DNA from: Chara braunii
Taxonomy: Eukaryota; Plantae; Charophyceae
DNA length: 64,000 nt
Assembly: GCA_003427395.1 (NCBI GenBank)
Contig: BFEA01000005.1
Location: 7,182,825-7,246,824 of the forward strand
Direction: 5' to 3'
The translations under genes and the position numbers were made by a program. Below the pieces are notes generated by a model. The model saw nothing but the letters and a program-made list of their open reading frames with translations. It had not been told where the DNA came from and did not search any database. Positions 10,193 to 42,598 of this stretch are shown piece by piece (positions within the stretch are counted from its first letter, which is position 1; the number at the start of each line of letters is the position of its first letter).

Positions 10193-10890
10193 CGCGCTTA
10201 TACAACAAAGACACAATAATGATGGTCGTAATCTTACTCCTCAAATGCAAAACAGAACCGAAGATCCTCAAATGCAGAATATAACCGAAGATCCTCAAAT
10301 GCACAACAAAACCGAAGAAAAGGGTAGCAGAAGAGGACGAAGAAGAAGGAGAAGAAGACGACGAAGAAGAAGAAGGAAGAAGAAGAAGGCGAGGAAGAAG
10401 AAGATAAGAAGACAAGAAGCACACCATAGAAGTCCCGAATGCGACTTAGTTACGAAAAAATAATCATGAAGCACTCTTGTTGGAAACAAAAAGCTCCTGA
10501 TGGGCGTTACGACCCGACCGGTTTCGCCTGGCCGCCTACCAGGAGTCTTTAGGGGTCTAAAGTCACTTGATGGACACTAGCCTATGGAGACTTTATCCTT
10601 GAGAAGACCACCTGTAGAAAGACCGTCGACACAACACTCCAATCGGTTGGCAGACTCGGCACTGAATCAGCTGCGAACCAATTCTTTAAATCCCAACCAC
10701 AACTCGAATCCCTCGTAAAAAAACACTATTCAAAAACAGGAGAAACTACAGATCAACACACCAGCAGTCAACCGGTACCGCGTTCAAGTCCTCAATCACC
10801 AACTTTTCACATCATACCAGCCTTAAGGGAACAATCAACTCAAACACTTAGAAAAACGAGACACACCCATCCAAAGAAACCCCCTAAACA
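10193..10890 (-). repeat. PLE 3' pseudo-LTR
   Basis: High similarity to 15425-16018, with a (GAA)n tract. Confidence 0.85.
10511..10557 (-). ncRNA. Minimal type I hammerhead ribozyme in pLTR (core mutated, CTAAAGA)
   Basis: Minus strand GACCC-CTAAAGA-CTCCTGG TAGGCGG CCAGGC-GAAACCGGTC-GGGTC; palindromic ACCGGT at stem III; stem I GACCC/GGGTC. Confidence 0.7.
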
Positions 10891-10941
10891 CAGGGAAACA
10901 ATGAGACATATCTCAAGAAAGGCCACCTGAGGACAAGTATC

Positions 10942-12275: not shown

Positions 12276-13448
12276 GCATTGGAACCGAAGGATGCATTAC
12301 ATGCGCTTCGCGGATGATTTTCTAGTAACAATCTCTAGTCCACGATCAAAAGCAGTGAAACTGAGATCTGAATTTGAATCGTTCCTTCACCATCATTGAC
12401 TAAACAACCCTTCATCATATCCAAAGACAAAGAATCAAAGCTAGGAGTGGGTAACAAGGGGTTAGAGTCAAAGGCACACAAAATTTGCGTATGCAAATCA
12501 GGCAACGATCGAATTCTGGACAAACGTACCAAGTTCTTCGAATTACAAAACCACGACGGGAACAAAGACGGCACCTCATTAATTCGACATGACACATAAT
12601 CTTTGAGTCGTGGGAGAGACTCGTGCGCGGTTGCACACGAGCAAACAGGCACGCTAGACTTTGCAAAGAGCCGAAAATTCTGAATCAAACATGCTTTTGT
12701 TTCGACACCACACGATACGTATGCGGCACACCAGCATCCCTTTCCAACTATGCTGAATATTCAAACCAGCCACAACTTTGGCACACAATCTCCACACATT
12801 CGATTTACAAATTCGATGGTCATAGACCAAACGTACTACCAACCGCTTCCTCAAATGCACGCCGAACCTTGACAAAAAATAATGAGACAACAAACATCTC
12901 AATCGGAACCTTGTCCTCTTTTCGCTGAAAGTACACCGTATAGGCAGCGATCAGAACATCGAAGTCCCACAATTTTAACTCCCCACGTATAGAAGGATTA
13001 CTTGAGAAGGAAGCTAGCGGGCCTTTTAGAGCGAAGGATCGACTTAAGAAGGGAACAATAGGATCAACCACACACATAACACCTCCTTTCAACCAGCCCC
13101 GAGCATACCTCAGTTCTTTTTTTCCAAAGCAACAATCTACCAAACTCCCTCCATAAAGTGTCTTCAATACCTTCCACTGATCCACCAACCGTTTGCCACC
13201 ACCACAACTCACCATTACATGATGCACCCCTTTGTTTTTACACTTCTCAAGAATCTTCAACAAACTAACTGAGACCGTACCATCCGGCGTGTGAAACAGA
13301 CACAAGGACCCACGATTAACGTCAGTATTCGAGCAATCCACAACTCCATCATCGTGCACTCTTTCTCAAGCCCACTCGACGTTTCCGCGAACGCTTAGAC
13401 TTATCTCAAATGTTAAGTGCTGGCGTCATCAGCTGAATAAAAAACTTC

Positions 13449-13772
13449 TTAGTATCCAACAAGTCCTCGGTCGAACAGCGACAAAAGCGGAATGACGTCA
13501 TGAGTGTGAGCACCACACCTACGCAGCCATTGATATAGTTTCTCGTTTCTTAGTCTTCCTTCTATTACCTTCTTCTGACAAGCCTGATAAACATGCTCCC
13601 TCCAAGGGGAGTGCATATCTCGTTGGGTGCTACCAATATAGGCATGGCAAGCCCACGGAGACACCAAAGCATACACAACCGGACCCTTCCATTCATCAAA
13701 AACACCGCCATCATCAGAGGAGAAACCAATTCGAAGAAAGAATTCACTTAACTTATCACGCCATGGAATCAC
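13449..13772 (-). pseudogene. PLE GIY-YIG endonuclease domain
   Basis: PVVYALVSPWACHAYIGSTQRDMHSPWREH motif. Confidence 0.85.
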
Positions 13773-14020
13773 ATTGAAAAGAGTTGGGCAACAGATAAGT
13801 TAGAAGAAGATTCACCTCTCTACAACATTACCATTCCTCGTAAATCGCACGAATTCTACAACATATCCTTACCACTTGCCGCATAAAAGTCGCGTCTGGG
13901 CATGACCCTAAGAAGTAGCGGAGTCACGCCCGTTGCTCTTTTATGAGGTATCCTCCCCTTCATCAGTCACTTCCACAACCGAGTCATTCTTAACTTGATC
14001 TTACCCCCATCATCTTCATC

Positions 14021-15396
14021 CTACTCTGCTATGTCGGTCGGCGGCTGCGCAATTACCTCCTTTGTCGGATCCAACTTAGTATATTCGATTCCCTCCTTCT
14101 CACAGATAGAGATAACATCCTTTTTCCTCAGGTTCTGAAGTTGTTTACGTGCCTCCCGGACAAACACATCCCTCTGGCTGGCTTGCCCAGTTGGAGAGGC
14201 TGGCCTCTTATCCTTGTCCTTCCCGGAAGACGGTCCTGCCACGTCATCCAAGTTCGCCTTCAAGGGGGTTCCCTTCGATCGCTTCCTCGTCCCTAGTCCC
14301 ACCATGGCTTCCTTTAATCGCTCAACCTCATCCTCCGATTCTTTCTGAGCATCGACTTCCGGTAAACACATTTCCTTCAGTAGATCAACCTCACGTTGAT
14401 GCTTCTCCACTAGTCCTTTCAGCTGCAAGTTCACTCTTTTCGTAGCGCTGGGTGAAGCAGCCAGAGTAACCTTAGGCCGAACGCGTGCTTCACTGGTCGG
14501 CGTATACCCGATTGTGACACTACTTCGTTTGTTACCAGGGCGTAAGGCCTCATTCCTCCAAACCTCCGCGTTAGATTCAGCTACTTCACACAGCTTCTTC
14601 AGAGTGAAAATTACTTCCCCCAATGTTGCCAGCCGCTTATCAGTAGACGCCTTGGTCTCTGCTTGCTCACGCCTAAGACGAGCCAATTCCTCCGCTTCAC
14701 TGGCAGACCTGGTCATCGTAGCAGATGTACTAGTTCCGTCGCTTCCTTGCTTCACTGTTCCACCTGTGCCCGCAGCCTTAGAAACTCGTCAATTTCACCA
14801 GTCTTGCCCACATTACACTGTCGGCTCATAGACTCCACTAGTGCCTTCAACTTCTTGATCTCATCCGACTCCCCCGTCTTCTTTCCACTCAGAGCTTCAC
14901 ATACTTTATCAAGTTTAGTCGACATCTCCTTATGCATCTATTTCTGGAATTCTTCACGTTCCTGTTTCTCTTTTTGTCGATGCTCCTCGTCTTCCTTCTC
15001 ACACTTCTTTCTCTCCTCGTCTTTGTGTTGCTCCCGTACTCTCGCCTCGTCGGCGTCATGCTTACTATTGATCTTCCTGACAATCTTAGAGTTTTCTAAT
15101 GAGCTAACCCTTCTCCCCAACCCACTACTGCCTCCCCCTCTATTATACTGCCCAGATTAGTACAGAACAACAGTTCCTACATTTGACGTAGACGACATAG
15201 TCAACAAGGGTTGTGCAGACACAATAGCATTAGATGGTTGCACCCCATTCAATCTACGATCCGGAAGAGGACAGAACCTGGAAATATGGCCAGGCTTACC
15301 ACAATTGTAATAGTAGCGACCTCCCGTCACATTAGGAATACTGTTTGACGCCATCACTTGGAAGTCGAAGCCACTCGTCGGTAGTATCACTCCCAC
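14021..15396 (-). pseudogene. PLE upstream ORF: CCHC zinc knuckle plus coiled coil (gag-like), fragmented
   Basis: YYNCGKPGHISRFC (first Cys mutated), E/K/R-rich coiled segments, possible SAP-like end LQNLRKKDVISICEKEGIEY. Confidence 0.6.
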
Positions 15397-15424
15397 CTCG
15401 GTTACTCCGTGAACAAAAGTACGC

Positions 15425-16018
15425 CGCGCTTATATAGCAAGGACACAATAATGATGGTCGTAATCTTTCTCCTCAAATACACAACAAAACCGAAGAAAAG
15501 GGTATCAGAAGAGGAGGACGGCGACAACGACGAAGAAGACGAAGAAGAAGAAGAAAAAGAGAAGAAGAAGAAGAAGAAGAAGAAGAAGAGGAAGAGGAAA
15601 AATAAGGCAAGAAGCACACCATAGAAGTAGACAGGTGTCCCGAACGCGACTGAGTTACGAAAAAATAATCATGAAGCACTCTTGTCAGAAACAAAAAGCT
15701 TCGGATCGGCGTTACGACCTGATCGGTTTCGCCTGGCCGCCTACGAGAACTCTTCAGGGATCTAAAGTCACTTGATGGACACTAGCCTAGGAAGACTTTA
15801 TACTGAATCAGCCTTAAATCCCAACCACAGCTCGAATCCCTCACAAAAAAACACTATACAAAAACAACAGAAACTACCGATCAACAAACCATCAGTCAAC
15901 CGGTACCGCATTCAAATCCTCGATCACCAACTTTTCAAATCATACCAACCTTAAGGGAACAGTCAACTCAAACACTCAGAAAAACGAGACACACACATCA
16001 AAGGAAACCCCCTAAACA
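15425..16018 (-). repeat. PLE 5' pseudo-LTR
   Basis: Direct repeat of 10193-10890. Confidence 0.85.
15716..15762 (-). ncRNA. Minimal type I hammerhead ribozyme in pLTR (stems mutated)
   Basis: Minus strand GATCC-CTGAAGA-GTTCTCGTAGGCGGCCAGGC-GAAACCGATC-AGGTC; intact CUGANGA and GAAA. Confidence 0.7.
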
Positions 16019-25903: not shown

Positions 25904-25965
25904 CAGAAAGCAAGTGGAAACAAGAAGGGGACCAAAACCCTGGACCAATTTATATCTATATATGT

Positions 25966-26155
25966 CAGTTTGTCACAACCCCTCATTTGTTGCCCTCTTC
26001 TCACTCTCTGCCCACGGTTTACAAGGCGGTTCTGTTTGATGATATATGAGTCGGTGAAACTCCGATGAAAACAGTTTGTCACAGCCCCTTGTTTATTGTC
26101 CTCTTCTCCCTCTCTGCCTATGGTTTGCCGAACAGCTCAGTTTGACAATATATAA
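25966..26155 (+). repeat. Two tandem 5'-truncated hammerhead-repeat copies within (AT)n
   Basis: 25966-26045 starts at CAGTTTGTCAC; 26046-26155 starts at ATGAGTCGGTGAAACTCCGATGAAAAC; both end TTTGA..ATAT. Confidence 0.85.
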
Positions 26156-26287
26156 ACATATCTATATATCCTACGCATGTGACGCGTCTCTCTCAGTGGT
26201 TCCGACGCATGCTGCGATGGTCATGCAATTTCTTCTTCGTCCCCACGATGCTCTCGTCTTGCCCCTGCTTGTGTATCTGCTTCTGCC

Positions 26288-26510
26288 GCAGTTTCCACTG
26301 CTGCAGTCTCCACTCCTGCAGTTTCCACAGTTGCAGTGTCCACCGTTGCGGTTTCCACTGTTGCAGTGTCCACTTCTGCAGTTTCCACGGTTTCCGCTGC
26401 TGCAGTGTCCACTCTGTCCGTTGCTGCAGTTTCCATTGGTCCAGTTTCCACTGCTCTAGTTTCCGCTGCTGCAGTTTCTACTGCTGCGGTTTCCACTGCT
26501 GCAGTTTTCA
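26288..26510. repeat. 15-bp minisatellite (GCAGTTTCCACTGCT-like)
   Basis: Translates as AAVST / VETAA repeats. Confidence 0.9.
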
Positions 26511-28974
26511 ATACAACAGTTTCCCTAACTGTAATTCCCCCTACTTTAGTTTTTATTGCTACAGCTTCCTGTCCTGCAGCTCCAATGCAAAGAACATCAC
26601 AATCTCTCTGACACTCACGTCCTTTGCTCCGAAATCTTGCCCAATGCACCCCCCTCTCATCTTTGTCTGTGCTTGGCCATAGACAACTGCATTCCTCCTC
26701 ACCACCCCCATCTCCTCCATGGTCTCGCTTGCAAACAGACTCTCCAGTTTCCATTGTTCCCATTGTTCGACTTGTATTGCTAGGTACAAGTTCAGCTTCT
26801 GTTTGCAAAACACTACTCTTGTTGTGTATCACCGACGACATCCGCGACATCGTCACTTGTTCAGGGATCAACAACCTGTTTCTTTGTCTGCCCCGATTCT
26901 CTTTGTGCCTCCTCCACAAGTTGTTGCGGTTCCTTTGTTTCAAACGGCGATATCTGCTCCTATGCCTCCTGCAGACAGTCCAGCTGCCTGCAGGCCGCCA
27001 CCAGTCCCTACTCAGGATGCAGGCGCTGCCCATAGTACACTCCCGACTCCAGGTACAGTCCCCATTCAGGATGCAACCCTAAACATTGAGGGATTGGAAC
27101 ATGATCTGCCCGGATTGCAGTTGACCCCACAAGGCGTAGACCACATGGGGGATCTGCAAATGGCTGACCAGCATTGTTCGGATGAACCACAATTTTGTGC
27201 TCCGCCATGCGCAGACCACATGTTCGATCTGCAAATGACTAACCAACAAACAACCCAACATAGTTTGGGCTTGCAACACCATCTGGGTGATCTGCAAATT
27301 GTTGGCCAGCATCCAACAAACCAGCTTGAGAACCTCATCAATCTTTGTGGTATGACAACAGCTAATATCTGTCTTCACATTCTCCATCGCCCTTTTTATA
27401 GACCATCAGACTTCCTTGCAATCACCCTTTAGCTTCATGCTGATCTTCCCCAATGACAGCCAGAGGATTGTAATTATACCAGCAAGGAGGCTTTACCATT
27501 GCTGTCCTACAATCAGCAATGAGGGACCGTCAACTTGAACTACGCAATGCTCGAGCAGGTGAGTGGTTTAATCCATCCCACATCTCTGCCTGCATTGTGC
27601 ACGGCTGTAGCGGACCTGTGGTTGGCCTGTGACACCAGCTCCTTGGCCTGTTCTCACAGGCCTGTGTTGTATTCGGGGTAGTCCAGTCCAGGCCGGTACC
27701 TCTGTCGATACCAGCCAGTCCAGTCCAGTCAGTCCGCTGGGGAAGTCCAGTCCAGGCCGCACACGCACGCCGCACACGCACGCGCCACATGCCCACGCTG
27801 CCCGGACCCCAGATTATTTATTATCAAGATCCGGGATGCTGCAGCTGCCAGGGTTTGAACCTGGGCAGCTGCTGGCTATGCGCGTGCGTAGCCACCTCTA
27901 TAACACACTGGCCACAGTGTGTGCATGGCCTGCTAAGGCGACACGCTGGTGTTGAAGACGTGTCGTGCCAACTATTTACACCACCACCCCCCGTCGAGCA
28001 CCGGCCAGCACAACAGCAGCGGGCAGGCAACTATTTCCCCTCCCCCCCCCTCTTCCCCCCCAGCGGCGGTGGGGAGACACCGTGGCTACTGCTGCCTGTG
28101 CCCGTGCCCATCTGCAGTGCCACGTAGCAGCCTGCTGTGCCACGTGGCAGCCTGCTGTGGACTGTGAAGACCCCCTAATCAAGGGCTGCTCTACAGTGGT
28201 GAGGGTCTGCTCACACATCACACCTTGGATCTGCAGTGTTGCTGCTAGGGGCTGATCAAGATCTCAGCCCCCTCCCTTCTCCAGTTGGCTTGCTGCAGTG
28301 AAGGCCAAGACCCTCCTGGTCTTGGTATACCTTGTGCCCTTGGAGATGCCAAGGGCCAGGTATCACCTCTCTCTTCCCTGCCCCCTACTAATCCACTTTC
28401 TCTACCTTTTCTCTCTCTCTTACTCACCCCCTCTACTTCTTCCTCTTCTACCTCACTCACTTCCTTCTAATCACTCTCACTACTCNTACCCCTCTCCCCA
28501 CCCCACCTTTTCTCCCACCACCCACTATTTTACTCTATTTTATTCATTTATTTTCTTTTCTTTCTCCTCTTTTCTCTTTGCTTCTTGATTCCTCTCCACC
28601 TTTCCCATCCCTTTCTCACCCATTCTCTCACCCTCCTCCCCCCCAACTACAACCCCATCACCCCCTCACCTTCCACTTCCATCCTTTTCTCTTTCTTACC
28701 TATGTCTCTTTTCCTTCTTCACTTTTTCATCCCCTTTCTCCCCCAATTTCGAATTTTTTGTGTTTTTCTTATTTTTATCTTTTTTTTGATTTATATTGCC
28801 TCCTTTTTCCAAAAATTCGAATTACCTTATTCCCCCCCTTCTTTTCTTATTTCTGATTCATTTCATTTTATTTTTATTTATTCTGAAAATTTGAATTTCT
28901 TTGCGGCACCCTTAAATCTGATTAGGAGTTAGTCATTCTTGCTTTCGGCACACATTTTGACCCCGAGGGGGTAA

Positions 28975-29072
28975 GGAAGTGCTGTCGAAATTTTCTCATT
29001 TTACTTAGCCTTTCTTCTTGACGGAAGTGCTGTCGAAATTTTCTCATTTTACTTAGCCTTTCTTCTTGACGG
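28975..29072 (+). repeat. ~48-bp tandem duplication
   Basis: GGAAGTGCTGTCGAAATTTTCTC...TTCTTGAC twice. Confidence 0.85.
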
Positions 29073-29456
29073 CACACTTCGGTCCCATGGGGGTAACGAA
29101 ATGTTTTCGAAATTTTTGGAAAATCCAGCACTTAATTTCTCTTCACCTCCTCATCTACTTATTATTTATTTGATTATTTCTTTATTTATTATTTAACATA
29201 AATAAATATTATTTTTCTTTTCACATTTTGTTTCCTTATTTCTTTAATTATTTTTATTTTTCTCTCAAAATTTCATTGTTTTTTTTTTTTTTTTTCGCCT
29301 CCCACCCGTGCTTGCTATTTTATTTTCTTGATTAGGTCATCGGTACCCTAGCCTGATCACTCAAACTCCGGTTAGGGTTTTCTTAGGGTTTTTCTAGGGT
29401 TTAGGGTTCTCCTAACCCCCCTACTTCCCCTTTCCATTCGGGCACCCTGGACTCGA

Positions 29457-29715
29457 TGTCGAGCGCATCGGTCCCGCACGGGGACCCTCCCGGCCGCGTC
29501 ACGCAGGATTTTGCAGGACTTGTCGCGGAGAGCGTTTGCCGCTCCGGCCGAGTGCGCCAGCCGTACCTCTCGCGAGCCCCTACGACAGGACAGGGTCACG
29601 CGAGGCACCGGCTGACGCACTCGGTCGGAGCGGCAAACGCTCTCCGCGACAAGTCCTGCAAAATCCTGCGTGACGCGGCCGGGAGGGTCCCCGTGCGGGA
29701 CCGATGCGCTCGACA
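29457..29715. repeat. Palindromic LTR (foldback, ~90 perfect bp, ~113-bp arms)
   Basis: 29457-29546 is the exact reverse complement of the last 90 nt before 29715. Confidence 0.95.
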
Positions 29716-30054
29716 GGTGGCGCCGTTGCCGGGGATCTTAGCTGCCTACCAGGGTCCTTAAGAGAATGAACCCAGGTTAAGTGCAGGCTGATGATCCAGG
29801 CAAAACGACAAAGGTTATAGGTTGTATGGGCTTATATAAGAGGACCGTATATGAAGTTATAATAAGACTGAGCGATGTATAGTGCGACTAAAGGTTGTAT
29901 CTTGGGCGTGAATAACTAATGGTAGAGCGGTTAGCTAAACTTAGAAGTAGAGTGGTCAAGAATGATGTAGGGCAAGCCCTCTGAAACTTGACGAACTGCT
30001 TACCGGTCTATCCCTTGTTACTCCTGTCAGGTTGGTTAGCAGAAAGAGCTGAAG

Positions 30055-31590
30055 ATGCCGGATGCAGATGGAATCGAGCGGGGCCTGGCAGCTACGCCAG
30101 CAGACTTCGTCAATGCCCTTGAAAAAAGGGAGTTGGCACGGCTACAGGTACCAAAGGTTGACATCTTCCATTTTGAAGGAGAGAGGGTGTCGAAATGGCT
30201 GGAGCTCCTGGAACAGGTTACGGCCGAGGTGCCTGAGGTAGATAAGTTTAAGTTCCTACCTCGATATATCTTGTCGGAAACCCGGCCCGAAGTAATGAAA
30301 GTAGGTGCTGAAGCAGGGGGAGACTGGACAAAGTTTAAGGCTGAGATGCAAAGGCGATTCAAGTTAGGGGATGGCTTGCTGACTAAGACAGATTTGGAGA
30401 TGCTGCAGCGGGATGAATTCTCCATAGTAGGGGCCTTCGCCACAACATTCGAGAAGATGGTAAGGAAAGTCCCAGGGTTGGCGGAGGAGGAACAGTGTGC
30501 CACTTTCCTGGGGCACTTTAAGAATTGGGAGGCCTCGTTGTTAACCAAGAAGGCTGCGTCAGGACAGAAACTGACCTGGGCCGCCATAAAGGAAGGCGTG
30601 ATAGAAGGAGAACTGGACCAAGTAGACATCTTCCAGATGAAACAGGCTAGGAAGAAAAGGAAGGCCTTAGACGCTACGACGAGTGATGGGCGCGACTTCA
30701 AGAAAATGGTGGAGGATGCGGTGGCCCAACTTGATGCAGCGAAGGAGGCAAGAAGAAAAACTATGGCGGCACCACAGACCCAAGGTAAAGCAAAGAAAGC
30801 GGTGGTGCAGGAGGAAGAAGAAGAGGAAGAGGAAGAGGAGCCCGAGCCGCAGAAGCTGACAAAGGCTCAAAGGAAAGCAAGGAATTCGGCTCAAGGGGGG
30901 CAAGGTTTAGGGAGGGGTCAGGTCCCACAAGTTGTAGCCATGTCGCCCCCTGAGTCACCTAGTCAAGCTGCACCAGCACACTATGGGCCGTGGCCAGGTT
31001 GTGGACCTTCAAGCCACTGGCATGGACATTGCTCATACGCCCCATGGCCACAGAGTGGGCCGCATGGGTCATGTGTCGGACCACCGATGAGCATGGCTTC
31101 CTGCGGCTTCCCGGGGCCCCAAGCGCAGCAAGTAAGTCACCCAAACCCACCGCCAAACCAACCGCCAAACCAACCCCAGCAGTCAGCCCCACAAGGGTCA
31201 CAAGGCAATCAAGGCGGTGGACGAGGACAAAATCAAGGGTGGGGCCGAGGACGAGGGAATGGTGGCCGGGGAGGAAACGGCAGAGGGAATGGTGGTGGTA
31301 ACGCTGCAGGCGGGGGAAGCGAGGGCTGGACAGCATCCGGGAGTCAAGGTGGCCAGGAAGGTGGAAGAGGTGCTGGCAGGGGGAGAATAGATTGGAGGAA
31401 CGCCATTTGTAGGCACTGCGGGAAGAAAGGTCACACTATCAAGTTCTGCCATGTCCGGAGAAACGATGAGGACGAAGGCCTAATCAGCACCAACTATGAT
31501 GGGGATATGTACGACAAGTGGGGGTACCACCTTGATCCAAGGGCCCCAGGTGGGACAAGGAAGGAGGCTACGACGAGCCGAGGCAGGTGA
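30055..31590 (+). CDS. Retrotransposon gag (511 aa) with G/R-rich region and CCHC knuckle
   Basis: Open ORF, FEGERVSKWL capsid-like motif, CRHCGKKGHTIKFC. Confidence 0.8.
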   Translation: MPDADGIERGLAATPADFVNALEKRELARLQVPKVDIFHFEGERVSKWLELLEQVTAEVPEVDKFKFLPRYILSETRPEVMKVGAEAGGDWTKFKAEMQRRFKLGDGLLTKTDLEMLQRDEFSIVGAFATTFEKMVRKVPGLAEEEQCATFLGHFKNWEASLLTKKAASGQKLTWAAIKEGVIEGELDQVDIFQMKQARKKRKALDATTSDGRDFKKMVEDAVAQLDAAKEARRKTMAAPQTQGKAKKAVVQEEEEEEEEEEPEPQKLTKAQRKARNSAQGGQGLGRGQVPQVVAMSPPESPSQAAPAHYGPWPGCGPSSHWHGHCSYAPWPQSGPHGSCVGPPMSMASCGFPGPQAQQVSHPNPPPNQPPNQPQQSAPQGSQGNQGGGRGQNQGWGRGRGNGGRGGNGRGNGGGNAAGGGSEGWTASGSQGGQEGGRGAGRGRIDWRNAICRHCGKKGHTIKFCHVRRNDEDEGLISTNYDGDMYDKWGYHLDPRAPGGTRKEATTSRGR

Positions 31591-32333
31591 ACCACCCGCT
31601 ACCCTAGCCATGTTTCAGATATGGCAGGAGAAAGAGGTCCGTAGTGACATCACGGTTGAAGAGGTGGGAGAGAACGAAGAGGTGGAGCAAGAGCGGAAAA
31701 CTGACACTACTAAGGCTGAGCCCATCATAGTAGAGTCGGACGATGAGATTGAAGAAGATTACTGGAACAGGCCGTTGCACGCTGAGACAGGGGAAGACTT
31801 GGAGAACGGCCCGACAGACAATGGAGAGAATGGAGGACCTGATAGACAAAGTCGGGAGATACCAACAGAAGCTGGCTGATATATGCGAAGAAGTCAAGGA
31901 GTGGCAAGGTAAGGAGCCATCGGTATACCTCTACGACCTAGGTCCGGGATCGCAAGGAGGGTCCCCGTGCGGGACCGATGCGCACGACACTGAGCCACCC
32001 TTCCCCCTTTGTGGGCGCCCGCGCTTGACTCACTAGCGCCACCCGTCACTTTCTACCGCGGACGCCCACCTACGCCCTCCCCTCACACGGACCTCCTCTG
32101 GCCCCCTCCAATCCGTCCTGTCACCTCCTTATGGCCGACGGCGTGTCCACGCTCCTAGCGCGACGACCGCCACATGCCAGGCCTTCCCTTACCCTACGGG
32201 CGCACCCACCCAGATTCCGGTCACTACGGCCACGGGACCACAACCCTCTGCCACGGTTTCAACTTTTCCGGGTAGCCCGCTTCTCCCTCCCCTTCGCACG
32301 ACCACAACGCCACCTGACTCTCCCCCTCATGGG

Positions 32334-33765
32334 ATGCCCCGCGCCGCTCGTGCGTCTACTTTCCCCACTCTTCCTCCTACTATTCCTCGCTCGATCTATG
32401 TTCACCGTCTTGAGACTGAGCTTGCCCAGATTCGGGCTGACCTCGCCCTTTTATGCCTTCAACCACCCCTACCATCACAGGTGGCCACACCTTCGGGCGC
32501 ACCCCCTCTTTCTCTACTCTTCCATCCATGCAGGCTTGCTTCCCCCGCCCTGCACCCCCTCCACCCCCATCCTACCTCCTTCCTACTCCCTCACAACCTG
32601 CTGCTGTTGCCCCCGCCGCTCCCCCATGCGGCCTGGGCGTACAGTCAGGTGCGCCCTCTTCTCCAGGACCTGCGCCGACTTACTCGGCCGTAGCGCAGGC
32701 CTCTGCTCCTCGATCTCCTCGCCACCAAAACGGTGGCGCACCACTCGTCCGCTTAACGGACATTGCCTTGTATAACGGTACAGGGATACGCGTGTCTCGG
32801 TGACTACAGTCTGCCACCCGCACGCTTCAGCTCATGGGCGTCCCACCCGACACGTGGGTGGCTCACCTCTCCACGCGCCTGCGCGGCGGTCCTTTGATGC
32901 CTGGGAGGATTTCTACTCTCACTCCTTTCGTGAGGGTTGGACCTCGACCTTCGTGGATTTTCAGGGGTTCCTTGAGGATCGCTTCGGAGCCTGACATGAC
33001 GTGACTAACGCCTTCGAGTGTGTCGTTAGTACACGCCGGTCCGGCTCTGGTGGCGATGCCGGCCTGGACTGCCACATCCAGGTCTTTCAGGACGCCCGCC
33101 TCATTTGTGATGTGGCGTTCCTCCCCGAGGCTGCCCTCATCGATCGTTTCTTGGCCAACCTTCCCCTTGAGCACCGATCTGAGTTATGGCGGTATGACTT
33201 CACATCTGCCTCGCAGGCTTACGAGGCCACCAGGGCCCATCAGCGAATGCGGGCCCGTCGTCAACCCACTTCCTCCTCCCAACCTCAGCGTATTGGTTAC
33301 GCTCCCTCCTCCTCTCACGACACTTTTCAATGTCGTTCCCCTTTCCATGGTCGTCCCTGCCGTTCCGCGCAGCAGGGCCGCCAGTTCTCGCACCGCTTCA
33401 CCACGCTCGAGTATGGTGAGAAGGACATTGTTGCCCCGCTGTTGCCTGAGGGTGACCACAACGACGACCTCGACCTCTGCGAGGTCGTTCACTACCACCT
33501 GGAGGATTCTACTCTCCCTATAGCCGAGCGCCTCCAGCTCGCCCTTTCCACCCTCTCCCGGGCACACAACTGCTCTAGTCATGCTGGTGCGTCACCCCCC
33601 GAGGTCCCTCAGCAGGACCTTCCTCGGGGCTTTGTCCCTCCTCGTGGTGTCCTTTCCGTTGAGGAGCGCACGTCCATTTTGCGCTGGCATGGGTGTTTGC
33701 GCTGCCGCCAGGACGGTCATACCCCCTCGCGGTGCCCTTACACCGCTGCCCTCGACTACGACTAA
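32334..33765 (+). pseudogene. Element C gag (fragmented)
   Basis: Knuckle CLRCRQDGHTPSRC; capsid-like segments. Confidence 0.7.
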
Positions 33766-34082
33766 GTTGAGCTCTCTCGCCCGCGTCGTGCTCAGTTACC
33801 CCCCAGCACCTCGCATCCCCGCGGTGCCTCCTAGCCACGGTGCAATGTACACCTGCGCCCTCCTCAGTAGTCGGCTTCCCGACATCTCCGTCGCGGTTTG
33901 CCCCTCTCGCTATTGGAGTTGAGGTATCGTAGGACCCGACAGAGTGTACTCAGCCCTCTTTCGTAGTATCGTCTGCGCCTCCGCAGACCACCATTTCCCC
34001 TCCTACCCCTCCGCGATTACTGACGCGTCGAGCCATTCGCTCAACCCGTTGCAGCGAGCAGCTTGCGACTCGCGAGGACGTT

Positions 34083-36700
34083 GTGTCCTCTCTTCTGAAC
34101 TTGAGAATGCTCCAGGCTCGTCAGGAGCGACTCACCCTCCATGTCGCTGCACTGTGTCGCCTTCTCACCATCCTCTCTGACCCTGATCGCACTCTCCCGA
34201 TCATTCGAGTACGACTGGGGACCTCCATGAGGGTGTACTCAATGCTGTGTGATTCCGGTTCTCAGGGCGACTTCATTCACCCACGTGTGGTGAAAGAAGC
34301 CTGCTTACCCACGATAGGGTCTCGGACTCCCATCTCGGTCACCCTAGGGGATGACAAAACCCAACGCTTCTTCGATCAGACGGTCACCGACCTCCCTTTC
34401 TTCCTCACTCTCGAGCCGACTGATCGTCCCTCGGTGTCTTGTCGCCACCGCTCCTAAGCACATTTTGATGTGATGGAGACAGGGTACGATTTCATTCTCG
34501 GTACTCCGTGGGCTCGTCAGTTCTGCAGCACCGAGGCCGATTGGGCGACCAACGCTCTCGTTCTAAGAACGAAGTGTGGACAGACGTATTGCGTACCTTT
34601 TATAGGTACCACTGCGACACCACGCCCCGATACTCCTCCCCCGGAGCCTTCCGTGCCCACACCATCTCCTACTATCACCGTCACCTCGCCTCGGTAGTTC
34701 GCCCACTTCATCCGACAGGACGACGTCACCTTCTTTACGGTGAACATTATGGATCTCTTGCACGATGATCCACCCTGTCCAGACGCCGAGCTCCTCTTTC
34801 TGGAGCAAGATCCTCCTCCTATCTCTATGGCTTCCATCTCTACTTCCCTCCCTCTGTCGTACGTCGAGTCCACCCCGTCATTGCGCACCGACGCAGGCGC
34901 TGAGGAACTCGCACACTATACGGCCGACCTGGAGCCCGCAGTTTGTGACCTCATTCGAGAGTACCACGGCGTTTTCCCATTGTCATTCTCGTACGCCGAC
35001 ACCCCACGATGCGCGACGTCGAGCATTCCATCCAGCTTGTGCCTGACTATTGCGTTCACCACCAGGCACCCTACAGACTCTCGATCCCCGAGGCCACCGA
35101 ACTCGAGCGTCAGCTTGAGGAGCTCCTGAGACTGGGTTTCATTAAACCCAACAACTCCCCGTGTGGTGCACCTTTCCTCTTTGCTCGCAAAGCGGATGAA
35201 ACTCTCTGTCTTTGCATCCATTATCGCGGGCTCAACCGCAATATAGTTAAGAACAACTACCCCATGCCTCGATCGGACGAGCTGTTCGACCGCCTAGCAG
35301 GCAACTGCTTCTTTACGGAGATTGATCTTCGTAGCGGTTACCATCAGATCCGCGTCGATGCAGCAGACCAACTGAAGACAACGTTTCGATCACGCTTCGG
35401 CCACAATGAGTTTACGGTGATGCCATTCGGCCAACGCACCCGCTACCTTCCAGAGGGCGATGAACGAGATCTCAGGGACGTCCTGGAGCAGTATGTTCTC
35501 GCAGAGTGTCCCACCTGTCAGGAGGTGAAGAGTGCGAACCACATGCCTTATGGTTTGCTCCAGCCTCTTCCTATCCCTGCGGGTCATTGACAGTCCATCT
35601 CAATGGACTTTATCGGTCCTCTTTGTCCTCCAAACCCCCGCGGTCATGATGCTATCCTGGTCGTCATCGACCGCTTCACTAAGCACACACGCTTTGTTCC
35701 GTGCCGCTATGCCATCAGTGCACGTGAGGTCGCCGACATCGTGTTTGACCAAGTCGTGCGTGACCACGACTTACCTCTGAGCATCATATCTGACCGTGAC
35801 CCGCGCTTTACCAGCCGCTTCAGGCGATGGCTCCACGAGGTTTACGACACCCAGATCCGCTTCTCCTCGTCTTACCATTCCCAGACCGATGGTCAAACGG
35901 AGGTCACGAACAGGACTCTCGATGATATTCTCCGAAAGATTTTTCATGAGGACTAGCAGTGGGATCTCCATCTTGCCCACGCAGAGATAGCCTACAACCA
36001 CACTGTCTCGCCGGGATGTCGCCTTACTATTGCGACCTCGGCTATCACCCTCGTGTTCCCGCGGACTTCCTTCGACCGTCACAGATGCACCCCGACACGA
36101 GTTGTTCCGCGCTGGATGATTGGGTTGCACACATGACGTCGATCATGAAGACCGCGCATGAGCACATAGCCGCTTCCCAGACTCGCATGGCAGCACATGC
36201 GAACCGATCGAGGATGGATCATTTGTTCAAAGTCGGTGATGATGTGCTTATCGACACCCGCCACTTATAGCTCGAAGCGGACACGCTTCGCAAGTTTCGG
36301 CATTGCTTCTTTGGCCCATGCCGCATTCTCCAGGCCGTCGGTTCTGATACGGCTACTAGCCCAGTCAGCTTCCGTGTGAAGCTGCCCGACTACCTACGCC
36401 AGACTCGTGTGCACGATGTCTACCACATCTCGTTACTGCGTCCCTACCGCAGACCGTCGGAGCGTTTCGCTGGACGACCATACGAGCGCCCTCCACCCAT
36501 CATGGTGGAAGACCATGAGGAGTTCCTCGTTTCAGACATCATTGGTCGCCGAGTCACAAACGACAACCCTTCTCATGTCGCGTATCTCGTACGTTGGAAA
36601 GGTTACCCTGATGAGGAGGCTACCTGGGAGCCCCTCGAGCACTTGCAGCACGCTCGCATGTTGGTGCGTGCCTATGACCGTGCTCGTTCTACTGGGTTGA
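34083..36700 (+). pseudogene. Element C pol: protease, partial RT, integrase, chromodomain; RT C-half and RNase H deleted
   Basis: LCDSGSQGDFI; IDLRSGYHQI, VMPFG joined at ~35500 to ECPTCQ; MDFIGPL, SDRDPRF; YLVRWKGYPDEEATWEP. Confidence 0.9.
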
Positions 36701-38115
36701 CTGCTCCTCCTCAGCCCACGGACCCTCCTCCTTTCCCTCGGCTGAGGAGATCGCTGAAGTCGAGCTTGCTCCATCTGAGGCAGACCTTCAGCAGCAGTCG
36801 GATGCTTCTGGGCGTCCACAACGCAGTCGTTGTCGTCCTGCTCGATACGACGATTGACTCTGACTTATCTTCCCACGTCTTTGACTTCTCAATACTCCAT
36901 CCGTTCCAGTTTTGCCACTTCAACTCGTCAACGTTGCGGCTCTTCCTCGACGACATTCCGGACTTCTCATCATGGACATTATCGACAACTTCACGGCCTT
37001 CGTCACGATCAGCTTTGCCTACTTCAGCCATCGTCACTCTCTTACCACCTTACCCTGTACAGTACCCTGGTTGTGTCGCATGATGGTCTCCCTTCGCCAG
37101 GTTCCTCTAAGTTGGGCTCTCGCTTGGTATACGCATAGGCATCAGGACTGTAGCGTTGCCTTGGTTTCCCAGCTTACGGATCTTGCTCCGACTTCCCCCA
37201 CCTTAGGAGTCATTTGCATGATTCCCTTACCCATCACTTTTTCTACCCTCTAACGGCCCTCACACCTTAGTTAGGCAGCCTTGCATGCTTCATCTAGGTG
37301 CGGCCAGTATACCAGGCTCCCTTATTCCCTTGCATGGTCGACCCTCCATAGCGGTCACTCTTGTAGTCGAGCATTATCTGCCCTAATGGTCTATCTGTTA
37401 GGGTCATTGGTTCTGTTCGCTTCCGGTTCCCTACCCTCATTGAGCCTGATGACAAGTGTCTCCTTGTCATTATGTGTGGATGCCCTTAGGAGTTTATGGA
37501 CCCCTAGACTGCATTCGCCACCCTCAGAGACCATCCCACCCTGTGGTTTGCCACACACTTCTCTTGTGACATATGTTTGTCTTGTTGTTGCTTTGTTGCT
37601 CTCAAACTGAGGCTACTGCCTCTAACATTTCTAGGATTTAGTTGTTTCTGCTTTTGCTGTTCTTAGGACTTATACACTAGTCAGCTGTTTCCAGACTGAG
37701 GCTACTGCCTCCAACAGTCTAGAATTTAGTTGTCATTACTTTCTGCTTTCCTAGGACATGTATACTAGTTAGTTGCTTCTGTTTTCACTTAGGCTGTTAG
37801 CTGTGACATTGCTGTTTTTTGTGACACTTTCTGTCCTAGGTTGCATCGCATGGACTCAGCATGGGGCTTGCTCCACATCCTAGACTACTCGTGTTTTCTT
37901 TTTCTTTGGTAGAGTTCCGCTTCTTGGCGGAAGCGTGCTTGTATCTAGGTGATCCATCATAGGCCGAAGATCGTGTGGCGGACCTCTAGTTGGCCTGTGA
38001 GACCAGCCCCTTGGCCTGTTCTCACAGGCCTGTGTTGTATTCGGGGTAGTCCAGTCCAGGCCGGTACCTCTGTCGGTACCAGCCAGTCCAGTCCAGTCCA
38101 TACAGTCCGCTGGGG

Positions 38116-38866
38116 TATACCCCAACCAGAGTTTGTATTTCGGATCATTCTGCATTCACACAGTTTGGAGTACGTGCGTTGGAGTCTCGCGTGGGAGCTG
38201 CACTGTGCCATCTTGCTCCACTCTCATCCTCCATCTCCATCTCTATCCCAGGCGGAGCACCACACCTGGTGGGTCCGCAACAACGGCTCTTGCCATTACA
38301 TGGCCATTGTACATGCCTCTGACCACTGGGAGCTGTGGGACAACGGCGCCATGGTCCATGCCATGATTGATGTCCCTGATTTCTTACAAAATGATGCTGT
38401 TTTCTTGCCACAACAAACCGTCCACAATCTCTTTTATGTTGAAGATCATTCCTCTGGCCCCGTGCTGCAGCAAGACAATGTACCAACACTCTGCGACCTT
38501 CTCCTTTGCACAGCCACAAACACTGTTACACTCGGCTGTAGCTGCCATCGTCTCTGTCACAGTCACTACAATGACATGGTTTCTGCATCCATGTGTGGAG
38601 AGGACTGTCCCACAGTTCCTGACTGCAGGCACCCTCCGCATCCGGACACTATATGTCCATTTTGCGGCCATGGGCGCTATACTGAATGCATGCTCTTTCG
38701 TGGTGACCGTTCTTCTTTCATTTTGGCCTGCAATCGACATGCCATTTGTCGGGGGTGTATGATAAGCATGCTCAATGCCACTCGTCGTGGCAATCTTCCA
38801 TGTGTTCATCCACGTCATCCTTACAATGCATGTCCTCTCTGTCGTCAAGGACAGACTTGTTCTTGA
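38116..38866 (+). CDS. 5'-truncated ORF: USP/peptidase C19-like His box plus two RING-like Cys/His clusters
   Basis: WELHCAILLH...CHYMAIVHASDHWELWDNGAMV...HNLFYV, then C..C..TLGCSCHRLC...CPFC and C...LACNRHAICRGC...CPLC; the tracked ORF start (37949) reads through LTR sequence. Confidence 0.55.
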
Positions 38867-39240
38867 GTCTTTTCTTATCCTCTTTTGCCTTCATCTTCAC
38901 TCCACACTCCATACTTTCCCTTACTTTCCCTTTATCATTCTTTGTTTGTCTGCTCTCCATCTCTCCTCCCTGTGTTTATCCCCTCCCCCTTCACTCTGCC
39001 TCTTTCTTACAGCGTACAAGTGGGCTGTTATTGCACACGGGGATGGGGGCAGCTCACACTCAACTTCATCAACGTGGCGATCCTTGTACGTGAGAGGCAC
39101 GGTGAAAGAGGAGTCAAAAAAAGAATGAGAAAAATGAATGGTTTCACTGTGCCCTCCGTGTTTGTCTTGTTTTTTTAATTTTTAATTTTTGCCGTTTGTT
39201 TCACAAATTACGCTCTTTTAGTTCATAGTTATGTGACAAT

Positions 39241-39415
39241 TAAGGTGGATTATCACTTACAGTGTAATCAGTTAGGGGATTCTGCAGACTGTTGAGGGTT
39301 CAGCCTCCTGATGAGTCGGTGAAACTCCGACGAAACAGTTTGCCACAGCCCTTCGTTTGTTGTCCTCTTCTCCCTCTCTGCCTATGGCTTACCGGGCAGC
39401 TCTGTTTGACTATAT
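39241..39415 (+). repeat. Hammerhead-bearing repeat unit, longest contiguous copy
   Basis: Near-identical to 8351-8466 plus 9277-9378. Confidence 0.9.
39284..39343 (+). ncRNA. Type III hammerhead ribozyme (complete)
   Basis: Same fold as 8394-8453; terminal stem III pair is G-C instead of G-U; cut predicted after 39293. Confidence 0.9.
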
Positions 39416-39946
39416 CTATGTATTTCAAAGAGAAAAATACAAGTCCAAACAAGAATGGAAATTTCAAAAACTGTGCTTGTGCTAACCTTTTGCCCTTTTT
39501 TTTGTGGTTGTGCAGCAGGACTGAGAATCTTGTGCCGGCTCCTTTGCTTTGCTAGGAGAAGGAGATCCCGATCATCCTTGGCGTTATCCAGGCCGTGTTC
39601 CTGATTGTAATCTGCATTGTCCAGGCCAGGATCCCAATTGTTAAATTTGGCACTATGCATGCTGGGATCCCGGGAGGTGGTCTTTCGTTGTAGTCCTTGC
39701 TAGAAGCTACGTCATCATCGTTAACCAGCATGGTGAGATACCAACCGTCTCTATCGATGAATTCATAAGGTGGGGAGTGCGTGGGAAAGGTCTTGTCGAG
39801 GGGAGAGAGAGCTGTCTGCATCGGATTTTGGGTTCAATAATCTTTTTAGTATTCGTTCCCCTTTACTTATCTAATTATTTATTTATTTATTTTCCTTCGA
39901 CATCAACGAGACTCAGAGAATTCCTCAGCAAAATTGAGAGGCCGCA

Positions 39947-42598
39947 ATGGACGAAGGGACACAGCAGAGCGGTGGTATTTGGATGAGGAGAGGGTGCAGG
40001 ACGAGGAGGACTACTGGGGAGCAGCCAGGAGTAGGTTTCTCTTCAGAAAGTAATAACATGGCGAACGGCTTTGACAGCCACAGACAGAGGCAGCAAGCCT
40101 TCTTGTCCATCTCCTCTCCACATCTTGTCCATCATTCTCGCCCTGACACTCCTGCTCTGCAATCCGACGATTTTCAATCTACGACTGCTGTTGAATCGGA
40201 CGACGGCTTTCTGTTCCCTGCCCTTCAAGTGGGCGACAGCTTGGGACTGGATCATCATCACCATCATCACCATCATCATCATGATCATCACGATCATCAT
40301 CAACATCATCATCATCAACATCATCGGCATCATCGGCATCATCATCATCATCATCATGAGCAGCAGCAGCAGCAGCAGCAGCATCATCATGACCGGTCGC
40401 AATCTCGACAGGATCGGTCTGGATCCCAACCAACATCCCACTGGCAAGCTCACGAGCGGAGGAGCGAAGCTGCGAATCAGCAGCAGCGGCAGGATCACCA
40501 GCATCAGATCCCCACTTCCATTGGCACCACCGCTATCACTGCCACCATCCTCACGAACACTGAAGCTCGATCTCGACTGGATCAGTCTGGAACATCCCAG
40601 TGGCAAGCACACGAGCGCATAAGTGAAGTTGGCAACCATCGGCAACAGCAGCATCTCCCTATCCCGAATGCCATCACCGCCGCAGCTGCCGCCTCCGCGT
40701 TTGCCAGTACCGTGACCTCCCTGTCCATCATCATGAACAGCGACGCTACCACTCCATGTCCCACTAATCACCCACACCACCAGTCAACAGGAACAATTAG
40801 GCAGAATGAGCACACACCCGCCACGACCACCACGCACACCACCCCCACCCGCATCACCCCACACCCCACCACTACCACCAGCAGCAATAACAACAGCAGC
40901 AACAGCAGCACCAACAGTGTCCAGAGCCCTGCCACGGAGAGAAGATCAAACACAGCCGGGTTCGAGTGCGTAGTCTGCTATGAAATGGCACACCATCCTA
41001 TTCTATCCCGATGCGGCCATCTGTACTGCGACGGGTGTCTGGACACATGGCTTTCTCGAAAGCAATTTGCAAACTGCGTCCTTTGCCGAGATAATTCTCT
41101 TTGTGATGGGGCTATGGCTGCTGACGGGTGCGACGATGACGAGCCACCAGCACTGATCCGGCTGCGAAGCGATTACTATCCGTCGAGCCCGCAGCTTGAG
41201 TATTATTCCTGCCACGTGTGCATGCTCCCTGCACGTCGGCCAGTTGCAACCCGGTGTGGACATGTATACTGCTACCCTTGTGTACGAATTGTTGATTACA
41301 CGCAGGCAGCTACTGCTACTGACACGTGTACTTCTCTTCTGCGTGACTACCGGTGTACGGGTTGTCGAGAGAGCGTCCGAAGGGGATGGCGGGCATTTGT
41401 GCCCATGTTCTCGTGCGGCGCGGTGCGCAGCAATTCTCAGGGCAATAATGGTGGTGGGGATGAGGAAGAACGACCTTTCCCGCCAGAAATGATGCCACGT
41501 AGACGGGCTGCTCCTCCTCCTCCTCCTCCTCCTCCTCCTCTTCTCAATCCCCATCATCATCATCATAATCACACAGGAGTGGTGGTGGTAGATGGCGACG
41601 TGGTGGCCATGGACGGTCAGATCGATTTTGCGATTACTGATGACGCCTTTGACATCAGCACTCTGGAGGAGAGCCGAGCTATGCGACAGGCGCGACAAGA
41701 GGCATTCCAGCGCCTGCGCGAGACTGCAATGGTTGGACTCGCGGAGCTGATAGTTCCTCAAGATCCCAATGAGCCTCTGCCGGACGACGAGATCCCTTTT
41801 GTTATAACCTCCCACATGGAAAACTGTCTGCGCAGTATTGGCCGCCACGACCTCCTTGAACCCCCTCCTGTTGCCGCCAATCATTACAATAATTCCTCAA
41901 TTCGTCTCCCAACTCCCCCTCTTCCTCCTTCTCTTCCTTCTCCTGCCTCTCTTCCCTCTCCTCCCTCGCCTCCCTCTCCTCCCTCTCCTCCCTCCCCTCC
42001 GTCTCCTCCCTCTCCTCCCTCTATTCTCTTTCTCTCCCTTTCTTCTTCTCCTCCTCGTCTATCTCCTTCTCCTTCTCGTCTGTCTCTGGATACGTCTCAG
42101 GATGTGGTTTGGGAGGAGAGTCTGGATGCAGCTCGGAGGGACTGGAGGGATGCATCGTGGCCGGATGCGGCTCGGGAGGACGTTTGGGAGCACGGTCGGG
42201 AAGAGGTTCGGGATGGGGCTTCGGGGGACAATTGGAATCACGGTTGGAATGAGAGCACACATGCTGGGATGGCATTGAGGAGGGCGGCACTGGGTGCAGC
42301 GAGGAGAGGGGTTGCTCTGACAATAGTTGCAGGGTCTGAGGTGGAGGCTGACGTGGCGAGGGGTCCATCGTTAGCAGCTCCAGAGCTTGGAGAGGAGGGA
42401 AGGAATACGCGAGATCGAGAAGCGACACGTGTCCTGCACACAGAGGAGGTGGTGGAGACTCCTCCACGGCAGCAGGAGAGTGCACCTGGTACTAGGCGCG
42501 CGCGCATGCGACGACCTCACAGCTCCTCCCTCCTTGGAGCACTCTCCGATATGGGGGATCATGAACCTCTGGCCAAACGCCAAAATCGCGACGGTTAA
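39947..42598 (+). CDS. Intronless 883-aa protein with two C3HC4 RING fingers (RMA/RNF5-like RING), poly-His/Gln and Pro/Ser tracts; putative E3 ubiquitin ligase
   Basis: CVVC..CGHLYCDGC..CVLC and CHVC..CGHVYCYPC..CTGC in a 2.65-kb uninterrupted ORF. Confidence 0.8.
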   Translation: MDEGTQQSGGIWMRRGCRTRRTTGEQPGVGFSSESNNMANGFDSHRQRQQAFLSISSPHLVHHSRPDTPALQSDDFQSTTAVESDDGFLFPALQVGDSLGLDHHHHHHHHHHDHHDHHQHHHHQHHRHHRHHHHHHHEQQQQQQQHHHDRSQSRQDRSGSQPTSHWQAHERRSEAANQQQRQDHQHQIPTSIGTTAITATILTNTEARSRLDQSGTSQWQAHERISEVGNHRQQQHLPIPNAITAAAAASAFASTVTSLSIIMNSDATTPCPTNHPHHQSTGTIRQNEHTPATTTTHTTPTRITPHPTTTTSSNNNSSNSSTNSVQSPATERRSNTAGFECVVCYEMAHHPILSRCGHLYCDGCLDTWLSRKQFANCVLCRDNSLCDGAMAADGCDDDEPPALIRLRSDYYPSSPQLEYYSCHVCMLPARRPVATRCGHVYCYPCVRIVDYTQAATATDTCTSLLRDYRCTGCRESVRRGWRAFVPMFSCGAVRSNSQGNNGGGDEEERPFPPEMMPRRRAAPPPPPPPPPLLNPHHHHHNHTGVVVVDGDVVAMDGQIDFAITDDAFDISTLEESRAMRQARQEAFQRLRETAMVGLAELIVPQDPNEPLPDDEIPFVITSHMENCLRSIGRHDLLEPPPVAANHYNNSSIRLPTPPLPPSLPSPASLPSPPSPPSPPSPPSPPSPPSPPSILFLSLSSSPPRLSPSPSRLSLDTSQDVVWEESLDAARRDWRDASWPDAAREDVWEHGREEVRDGASGDNWNHGWNESTHAGMALRRAALGAARRGVALTIVAGSEVEADVARGPSLAAPELGEEGRNTRDREATRVLHTEEVVETPPRQQESAPGTRRARMRRPHSSSLLGALSDMGDHEPLAKRQNRDG

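Follow-up and report, generated by a model that had tools for sequence, protein, structure and literature searches.

Hammerhead ribozyme repeats flank a protein-coding sequence in a 64,000-nt stretch of the Chara braunii genome (assembly GCA_003427395.1, contig BFEA01000005.1, 7,182,825-7,246,824 of the forward strand), here called the window, in whose positions all features are given. This raises the question as to whether the repeats and the coding sequence between them form one mobile element or were brought together by several insertions. A first-pass annotation had proposed the former: a new hammerhead-bounded retroelement, released by ribozyme cleavage, that carries a ubiquitin-editing protein and whose reverse transcriptase (RT) has either been deleted or is supplied in trans. 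We read the region instead as several retroelement insertions stacked at a single TA-rich target, and not as one hammerhead-bounded element. In our explanation, which as a whole we hold with good though not complete confidence, the segments 26170-27605 and 38283-39239 are the two parts of a dead, 5'-truncated copy of a Penelope-like element (PLE) of the Chlamys-1_cBra type, assigned by description and not by alignment, and the ribozyme repeat is a separate hammerhead module.

The coding sequence is split in the window by a long terminal repeat (LTR) retrotransposon block at 27606-38282 (+ strand), of the chromovirus-type Ty3/Gypsy class and with decayed open reading frames (ORFs). The block begins with TG, ends with CA and lies between two copies of the target-site duplication ACGGC (27601-27605 and 38283-38287, identified from the sequence and the alignment described below); its 27606-27742 segment matches 37974-38115 at 92%, and Pfam detects RVT_1 (3.4e-08) and Chromo (5.2e-13), so that the LTRs, short target duplication, RT and chromodomain of a Ty3/Gypsy chromovirus are all present. 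The first-pass annotation had placed the start of this interruption correctly and its end too early, at 38115. The last 167 bp of the block (38116-38282) belong to the insertion and not to the ORF; they have no partner at the 5' LTR, whose match to the 3' LTR is confined to the latter's first 137-142 bp, and the block is therefore rearranged. As a whole, it is absent from two comparison copies: L002, a 1161-nt metagenome contig that carries the protein P0001, and L003, on C. braunii contig BFEA01000037.1 of the same assembly. Both run directly from the equivalent of 27605 to that of 38288. L002 aligns to 27329-27604, continues straight on to 38283-38866 and then to 38974-39234, and L003 (aligned over 10016-10589 to the body, the part upstream of the block) likewise joins the body straight to the protease/finger segment. 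Removing the inserted block and one ACGGC copy leaves a continuous reading frame in the window. Because L002 and L003 independently make the same join, both flanks of the LTR insertion are one ORF; on this point the first-pass annotation was right, and the outcome that it had itself named as refuting it did not arise.

The two flanks would also be united if a host gene encoded a Josephin-RING protein and was spliced across an intron containing the Gypsy element; the sequences GTGAGT (27559) and CAG (38249-38251) would indeed allow an in-frame splice. However, L002, L003 and the intact relative P0002 all read the supposed donor as coding (GEWFNPPSHISACIVHG) and lack 38116-38282, and the sequence is a very high-copy repeat. 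The uninterrupted copies, by translating the donor, rule out an intron with donor 27559 and acceptor 38251, and we regard a host gene as next to impossible.

What remains of the element in the window starts at 26170, directly after a 13-nt target copy and not at 26165 as had been annotated. The first part, 26170-27605 (+), is a 5'-truncated ORF remnant, delimited with Tandem Repeats Finder, the reading frames and alignment to L002, P0002 and L003; it consists of a low-complexity linker, which includes a 15-nt tandem repeat at 26283-26524 (Tandem Repeats Finder), followed by the N-terminal half of a Josephin-like domain. The second part, 38283-38866 (+), encodes the C-terminal half of this domain and two Cys/His fingers, is 77% identical to P0001 and ends in a stop codon at 38864-38866. 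It is followed by a T-rich 3' untranslated region (UTR) at 38867-39239 (+) that ends in GTGACAA, as defined by comparison with L002, L003 and reads, and then by a complete hammerhead repeat; the ORF end, the T-rich region and the complete repeat had all been annotated in this order. Besides the LTR insertion, the ORF has been broken by a TAG at 27430-27432, a TGA at 27454-27456 and a 1-nt deletion near 27481. The 5' truncation and decay of the copy account for the missing RT, and we see no sign of a non-autonomous design with RT supplied in trans, which had been suggested as one possibility.

The 3' UTR varies between copies. A CT-rich stretch of ~100 nt after the stop codon (38868-38966) is missing from L002, L003 and many transcripts and present in other DNA copies, and an RNA joint from 38867 to 38967 with CTTT is supported by 87 reads in X22, one of two RNA-seq runs described below. 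Since other DNA copies carry the stretch, it is a subfamily indel.

What does the ORF encode? The first-pass annotation had described a USP-like (ubiquitin-specific protease) domain followed by two RING fingers. The protease is Josephin-like instead. The intact relative P0002 matches Pfam Josephin at 25.2 bits (E 1.6e-05, cut-off 26), and the top seven PDB matches in a Foldseek search with its structure model are Josephin proteins (ataxin-3 and Josephin-2), with USP-like proteases ranking behind. In the window, the codon of the Josephin-like Cys lies at 27346-27348 and that of the His at 38294-38296, and the Cys-His spacing of ~90-100 residues fits Josephin and not USP. A USP (peptidase C19) assignment, which would call for a Cys box and a His box in a fold of at least 300 residues, was rejected, as there is no Pfam UCH match and the only signal in a PDB profile search is USP12 with an E of 0.62 over the His box. 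The two Cys/His fingers are present. Finger 2 has C3HC4 spacing, with sub-threshold matches to RING_XB3-XBAT31 (18.1 bits, cutoff 50) and zf-RING_5 (15.4 bits, cutoff 27.9); a profile search with finger 1 gave no RING match; and the language-model neighbours of the fingers are all RING families, with scores <0.9, too low to count. Every Cys and His is conserved in the three copies compared, and the ratio of nonsynonymous to synonymous substitution rates (dN/dS) between copies is 0.28-0.38. The protease-plus-finger module is under purifying selection and was therefore a working protein in the active lineages of the family.

How widespread is the family? A second 5'-truncated copy of the Josephin element, cut by the window end, lies at 63773-64000 (+) with an open frame and 76% identity to 26657-26883; it enters the body ~490 nt further in (26657 vs the body start at 26170). 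The repeat-then-body junction thus recurs at 63654-64000, as the first-pass annotation had noticed. Together with L003, this gives three copies with different 5' truncation points (26170 and the equivalents of ~26657 and ~27087), each after TA-rich DNA. To these we added depth data for the region 38283-40300 from datasets with the same organism label: contigs of a DNA run (X1) and raw reads of two oligo-dT RNA-seq runs (X21 and X22, both from poly(A)-selected libraries). DNA word depth is 1e4-2.6e5 over 38283-39234, vs ~5 in the flank after 39438. In both oligo-dT runs, one direction outnumbers the other 5-10 fold among the RNA reads over the ORF, and under the usual stranded protocol this direction is sense; almost none of these reads is identical to the window copy; the unique flank has no RNA reads in X21 or X22. 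The ORF therefore belongs to a very high-copy, sense-transcribed repeat family of C. braunii.

Protein searches returned few relatives. An exhaustive search of representative proteins with the downstream ORF gave three clusters only, P0001, P0002 and a host HEAT protein, P0003, and no relative was found in the Joint Genome Institute (JGI) metagenomes. Word-index searches gave P0001 and P0004 only, with no long relative showing an RT; P0004 is the gene model CBR_g37361 on the L003 contig, BFEA01000037.1, and was recovered with the body ORF. Through P0003 and P0004, the C. braunii assembly GCA_003427395.1 is seen to contain relatives of the ORF. P0003 itself is a Maestro/HEAT-repeat gene model that spans 305 kb and ends in 55 residues of the Josephin-element ORF, a tail that is probably a mis-annotated terminal exon derived from a repeat copy.

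These properties recall a published retrotransposon. Craig, Yushenova, Rodriguez and Arkhipova (2021) described three Chlamys-type PLEs in C. braunii (PMC8557442). One of them, Chlamys-1_cBra, has an ORF of ~1,800 amino acids with a C-terminal extension that contains a weak Josephin-like motif and then a conserved Cys/His motif (PMC8557442); the other two carry canonical hammerheads (PMC8557442). PLEs of C. braunii reach very high copy numbers, are frequently 5'-truncated, form partial tandems and insert in microsatellites (PMC8557442). The window copy has the Josephin-like and then Cys/His C-terminus, the host and the very high copy number of Chlamys-1_cBra, together with frequent 5' truncation, microsatellite-biased (TA-rich) insertion and a 13-nt TA-rich duplication. 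In full-length copies, endonuclease (EN) and RT would lie upstream, and the window copy would have lost them when target-primed reverse transcription left it 5'-truncated. Contrary to what had been claimed, the element is not new: a Josephin plus Cys/His PLE of this alga was already known as Chlamys-1_cBra (PMC8557442).

A Dualen-like non-LTR retrotransposon is another conceivable source of the ORF. Dualen elements of green algae likewise have a Josephin-related cysteine protease, which is mentioned by Craig et al. (PMC8557442) and drawn as a Dualen domain in Chlamydomonas, and 5' truncation, a microsatellite target and the lack of a visible RT fit either class. However, the published Chara element with Josephin and Cys/His motifs is a PLE (PMC8557442), and the 3'-terminal motif of the element is common to the hammerhead module, in a genome in which hammerheads are tied to PLEs (PMC8557442). 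We therefore consider a Dualen origin improbable and a Chlamys-1_cBra-type PLE the better reading.

The next question is whether the hammerhead repeat belongs to this element. The ~180-nt repeat is present in seven copies in the window, at 8350-8466, 9277-9378, 9431-9500, 25966-26045, 26046-26146, 39240-39410 and 63654-63756, all of them on the + strand (blastn and alignment). Only two contain a whole type III hammerhead, at 39286-39341 and 8396-8451, and both match RF00008 at 45.8 bits, just below the gathering score of 48.5, with an E of 7.8e-07 for the entire window (Rfam). The minimum free energy fold of the RNA is a three-way junction with three helices (-24.4 kcal/mol, z -2.9). With CUGAUGA and GAAA cores, three helices, an open stem III and a cleavage triplet, GUU|G, the sequence has the features of a type III hammerhead, and the cut would fall after U39293; chance occurrence of the 29-nt core is not expected. 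The complete module downstream of the element, 39240-39410 (+), is delimited by the Rfam match, the fold, a sharp 5' edge at 39240 and a very high depth. The further module copies at 8350-9500 (+) include the whole ribozyme in 8350-8466; an assembly gap (a run of N at 8467-9276) lies inside a module copy there and is probably a collapsed tandem array.

The copies before the element are different. Tail 1 (25966-26045, +; blastn 81% to 39336-39415) has no ribozyme core, its first position corresponding to 39336 within the 3' strand of stem III; tail 2 (26046-26146, +; blastn 88% to 39311-39418) begins at ATGAGTCGG within the CUGAUGA box. Both are 5'-truncated, which agrees with the first-pass annotation, and alignment shows neither stem I nor the cleavage site nor the 5' strand of stem III in them; an Rfam search for a hammerhead at 25966-26146 gave no match. 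They are tails of the hammerhead module and not copies of the element's own GTGACAA terminus. A similar tail, at 63654-63756 (+; blastn and alignment), precedes the second element copy.

Several observations separate the module from the element. L003 ends in GTGACAAT, followed by ATATATAT, that is (TA)4, and then by unique DNA, with no hammerhead module, and in L002 and two DNA contigs the 3' UTR is followed by ATATAT and then by a truncated tail. Loose ends of reads are seen before 39240, with two further conserved contexts upstream, one of them identical to window 8321-8349. The copy at 8350 is preceded by (TA)8 and ~40 nt of a different upstream context, which is the commonest in RNA reads. 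The DNA depth of the module, 0.4-1.55e6, is ~10x that of the ORF. Because of the sharp edge at 39240, the other upstream contexts, the ~10x depth and the L003 3' end that lacks it, we take the hammerhead repeat to be a separate, more abundant 3'-terminal module and not the Josephin element's own end. The module and the Josephin element do share the terminal motif TGTGAC(A/G)AT(AT)n, which suggests that the module is probably copied by the same RT as the element or by a related one.

When metagenomes were scanned for the 29-nt core, the sole return was a phage-like contig (L004/L005; JGI Ga0114902_1000484 and Ga0114903_1000585), whose type III hammerhead is unrelated. This hammerhead scores 53.6 bits, and the contig also carries a Siphovirus Gp157, a DNA methylase and a DnaC-like ATPase; its stem II and loop are identical to those of the Chara module, and stems I and III are unrelated.

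How were module and element brought together? The junctions are marked by three 13-nt target copies: TATATCTATATAT at 25951-25963 in the upstream flank of the stack, CATATCTATATAT at 26157-26169 between the tails and the body, and TATATCTATGTAT at 39411-39423, with single-copy DNA beyond. In the whole window, the 8-mer ATATCTAT is found at just three positions, 25952, 26158 and 39412, which are exactly the three junctions, and at the stack end DNA word depth falls from ~4e5 to ~5 after 39438. The target copies bracket two units, tail 1 plus tail 2, and the body through the 3' UTR plus the whole module; within the second, the UTR adjoins the complete module at GTGACAA|TTAAGG with no TA spacer. 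The simplest reading would be that a single TA-rich site received two target-primed insertions, each accompanied by a 13-nt duplication. In one event, the complete module would have been inserted together with, and directly behind, the Chlamys copy, most likely because the RT, on reaching the 5' end of a module RNA, had jumped to the 3' end of an element RNA; the two truncated tails would have been added upstream in a second event, and the chromovirus-type LTR element would have landed inside the Josephin domain later. We infer both the template switching and, from the literature, the link to an RT.

The same junctions bear on the hammerhead-bounded retroelement with ubiquitin-editing cargo and RT in trans. 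In favour of such an element, the body is always found with the protease/finger segment, both are next to hammerhead repeats, and the family is transcribed. However, the upstream copies lack the cleavage site, the 5' truncation points vary so that there is no fixed 5' end, one copy (L003) has no 3' hammerhead, and the same protein architecture has been published as the C-terminus of an RT-encoding element (PMC8557442). Release of a bounded unit by cleavage does not agree with these copies, as one cut at most, after 39293, could be made, and we consider this explanation very improbable.

A stronger competitor is a Josephin-type Chlamys subfamily that owns the module as its 3' terminus, in which case the locus would be a canonical PLE partial tandem, with pseudo-LTR tails followed by the main copy. 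In its favour, no TA spacer separates the UTR from the complete module, 13-nt target copies stand at both ends of the unit that runs from the body through the module, and module tails lie directly upstream of the 5' end of all three element copies, on the same strand, and downstream of two of the three. The association of module and Josephin element is thus not random; in L003, a 12-nt mini-copy, GACGATATATAT, lies between tail and body. Against ownership stand the L003 end (GTGACAAT, (TA)4 and unique flank), the (TA)3 and truncated tail that follow the UTR in L002 and two DNA contigs, and the sharp 39240 edge, with other upstream contexts that are commoner and a module depth that is ~10-fold higher. 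Moreover, the target copy between tails and body points to separate events, and no hammerhead is given for the Josephin type (PMC8557442). Because of L003, L002 and the 39240 edge, we rate template switching above module ownership as the cause of the co-insertion, and consider the module-owning subfamily unlikely. More generally, it is tempting to speculate that the module is a shared 3' handle, which a Chlamys RT copies as a tail alone or from which it jumps to element RNAs, or else that a Josephin subfamily has acquired a hammerhead; taken together we hold these possibilities tentatively. If the module is a shared handle, tail RNA would be abundant after self-cleavage, and both composites of a Chlamys-1 fragment with a whole module and stacks of tails would result.

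Is the ribozyme active? Only the downstream one is whole, and it would make a single cut in a read-through transcript, after U39293. The first-pass annotation had suggested that transcript ends be sought at the GUU site and that circular RNA junctions be looked for in reads. From bin 39235-39302 to bin 39303-39370, RNA depth rises 7.7-fold in X21 and 5.1-fold in X22 (raw oligo-dT RNA-seq), and depth rises 42-fold in X5, a set of contigs that are probably RNA, vs 1.46-fold in the DNA contigs of X1. A rise past the predicted cut fits self-cleavage with build-up of the 3' product and also fits transcription of many truncated copies; a pile-up of read starts was not among the features listed. Go-back joints from 39415 to 39299, 39314 and 39322 are present in DNA as well as in RNA and are therefore tandem tails, not proof of circles. 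For circular RNA there is no evidence, since all go-back joints also occur in DNA contigs or match tandem tails. Self-cleavage in vivo is likewise our inference.

Several points weigh against our explanation and keep our confidence in it below certainty. The assignment to Chlamys-1_cBra rests on matching a published description and not on alignment. No RT is shown upstream of any copy, all three being 5'-truncated downstream of any RT. The P0002 structure model has a low confidence (predicted local distance difference test, pLDDT, of 47), so that its fold matches are weak support, and the fingers score below threshold as RING domains. At 39294, no accumulation of read starts is listed, which is weak evidence either way as the libraries are oligo-dT. 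Finally, hammerhead tails lie before three of three copies and after two of three, always on the same strand, though Craig et al. give canonical hammerheads for two other Chara subclades and not for the Josephin type (PMC8557442). A closer tie, such as a Josephin subfamily that owns the module, is thus possible.

The surroundings of the stack contain further features. Both Josephin-element copies in the window lie on the + strand, the same as all seven module copies, and the only two (TA)4+ tracts in the window are each within ~40 nt of a module copy. An 883-residue ORF at 39947-42598 (+) has His/Gln-rich and Pro/Ser-rich low-complexity stretches and two RING fingers that are significant in Pfam (zf-C3HC4, 2.9e-10). 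It begins 520 nt downstream of the stack, beyond a flank (39439-39914) at single-copy DNA depth, and has no detectable similarity to the element's fingers; the interval 39915-40300, which covers its start, was matched by no DNA contig or raw RNA-seq read. On the minus strand, ~10193-16018 is a gag-plus-PLE copy with RT motifs in the ORF at 10942-11583. Its 3' side has no hammerhead even with lax filters, none of its ORFs has a Pfam match, and a word-index search with the RT of this PLE gave no match. Weak sub-threshold Rfam matches were seen for U6 small nuclear RNA (22 bits, 55751-55827, -) and U2 small nuclear RNA (27 bits, 47-93, -).

What, then, does the locus add? It is not a new kind of element: the retrotransposon family is published, and ribozyme repeats have already been tied to Chara PLEs. 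Its value is that of a well-resolved example, with three 13-nt target copies, a shared terminal motif, tails on the same strand and a 5- to 42-fold rise in RNA depth, and it suggests a route by which hammerhead tails are copied into TA-rich DNA along with autonomous Chlamys elements. If the module is a shared handle, or if the hammerhead was acquired by a Josephin subfamily, template choice in a PLE of the plant lineage would be linked to processing by a ribozyme. The protease-plus-finger module also makes for an interesting case of a retrotransposon with predicted ubiquitin-pathway domains.

A comparison with known systems places both parts of the stack. The predicted protease resembles the Josephin/MJD deubiquitinases (ataxin-3, Josephin-2) and the Josephin-related protease of Dualen non-LTR elements in its papain-like Cys...His order, its domain of ~150-170 residues, its near-threshold Pfam match and its best fold matches; it differs in being ~20% identical to them and fused to two Cys/His fingers, and its deubiquitinase activity is a prediction. 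With Chlamys-1_cBra, the element shares the host, the very high copy number, the C-terminal extension, 5' truncation and microsatellite-like targets. Unlike it, the window copy has no EN or RT, so that its class is judged from the C-terminal part; insertion here was into TA-rich DNA, while (CA)n and (C)n are the targets stressed for Chlamys in the paper (PMC8557442); and hammerhead-module copies adjoin the element here, whereas none are reported for the published type (PMC8557442). The module itself is closer to Chlamys-2_cBra and the EN-lacking PLE subclade of Chara and Selaginella, which have canonical 3' hammerheads (PMC8557442): in the same genome, a type III hammerhead lies near the 3' end of a retroelement module that is a 3' tail copied alone or with upstream sequence. 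In contrast to those elements, we found no autonomous owner for the module here. Plant retrozymes (Cervera, Urbina and de la Pena 2016, PMC4918200) likewise have a type III hammerhead in a dispersed, transcribed repeat. They are non-coding, flanked by two hammerhead-bearing LTR-like repeats and mobilised by a Gypsy RT via circular RNA (PMC4918200), whereas here a single ribozyme is intact, a coding remnant is present, the targets are TA-rich, the copies are 5'-truncated and the tandem junctions in RNA are also found in DNA. Given upstream copies with no cleavage site, the ORF remnant and go-back joints in DNA too, a retrozyme was rejected.

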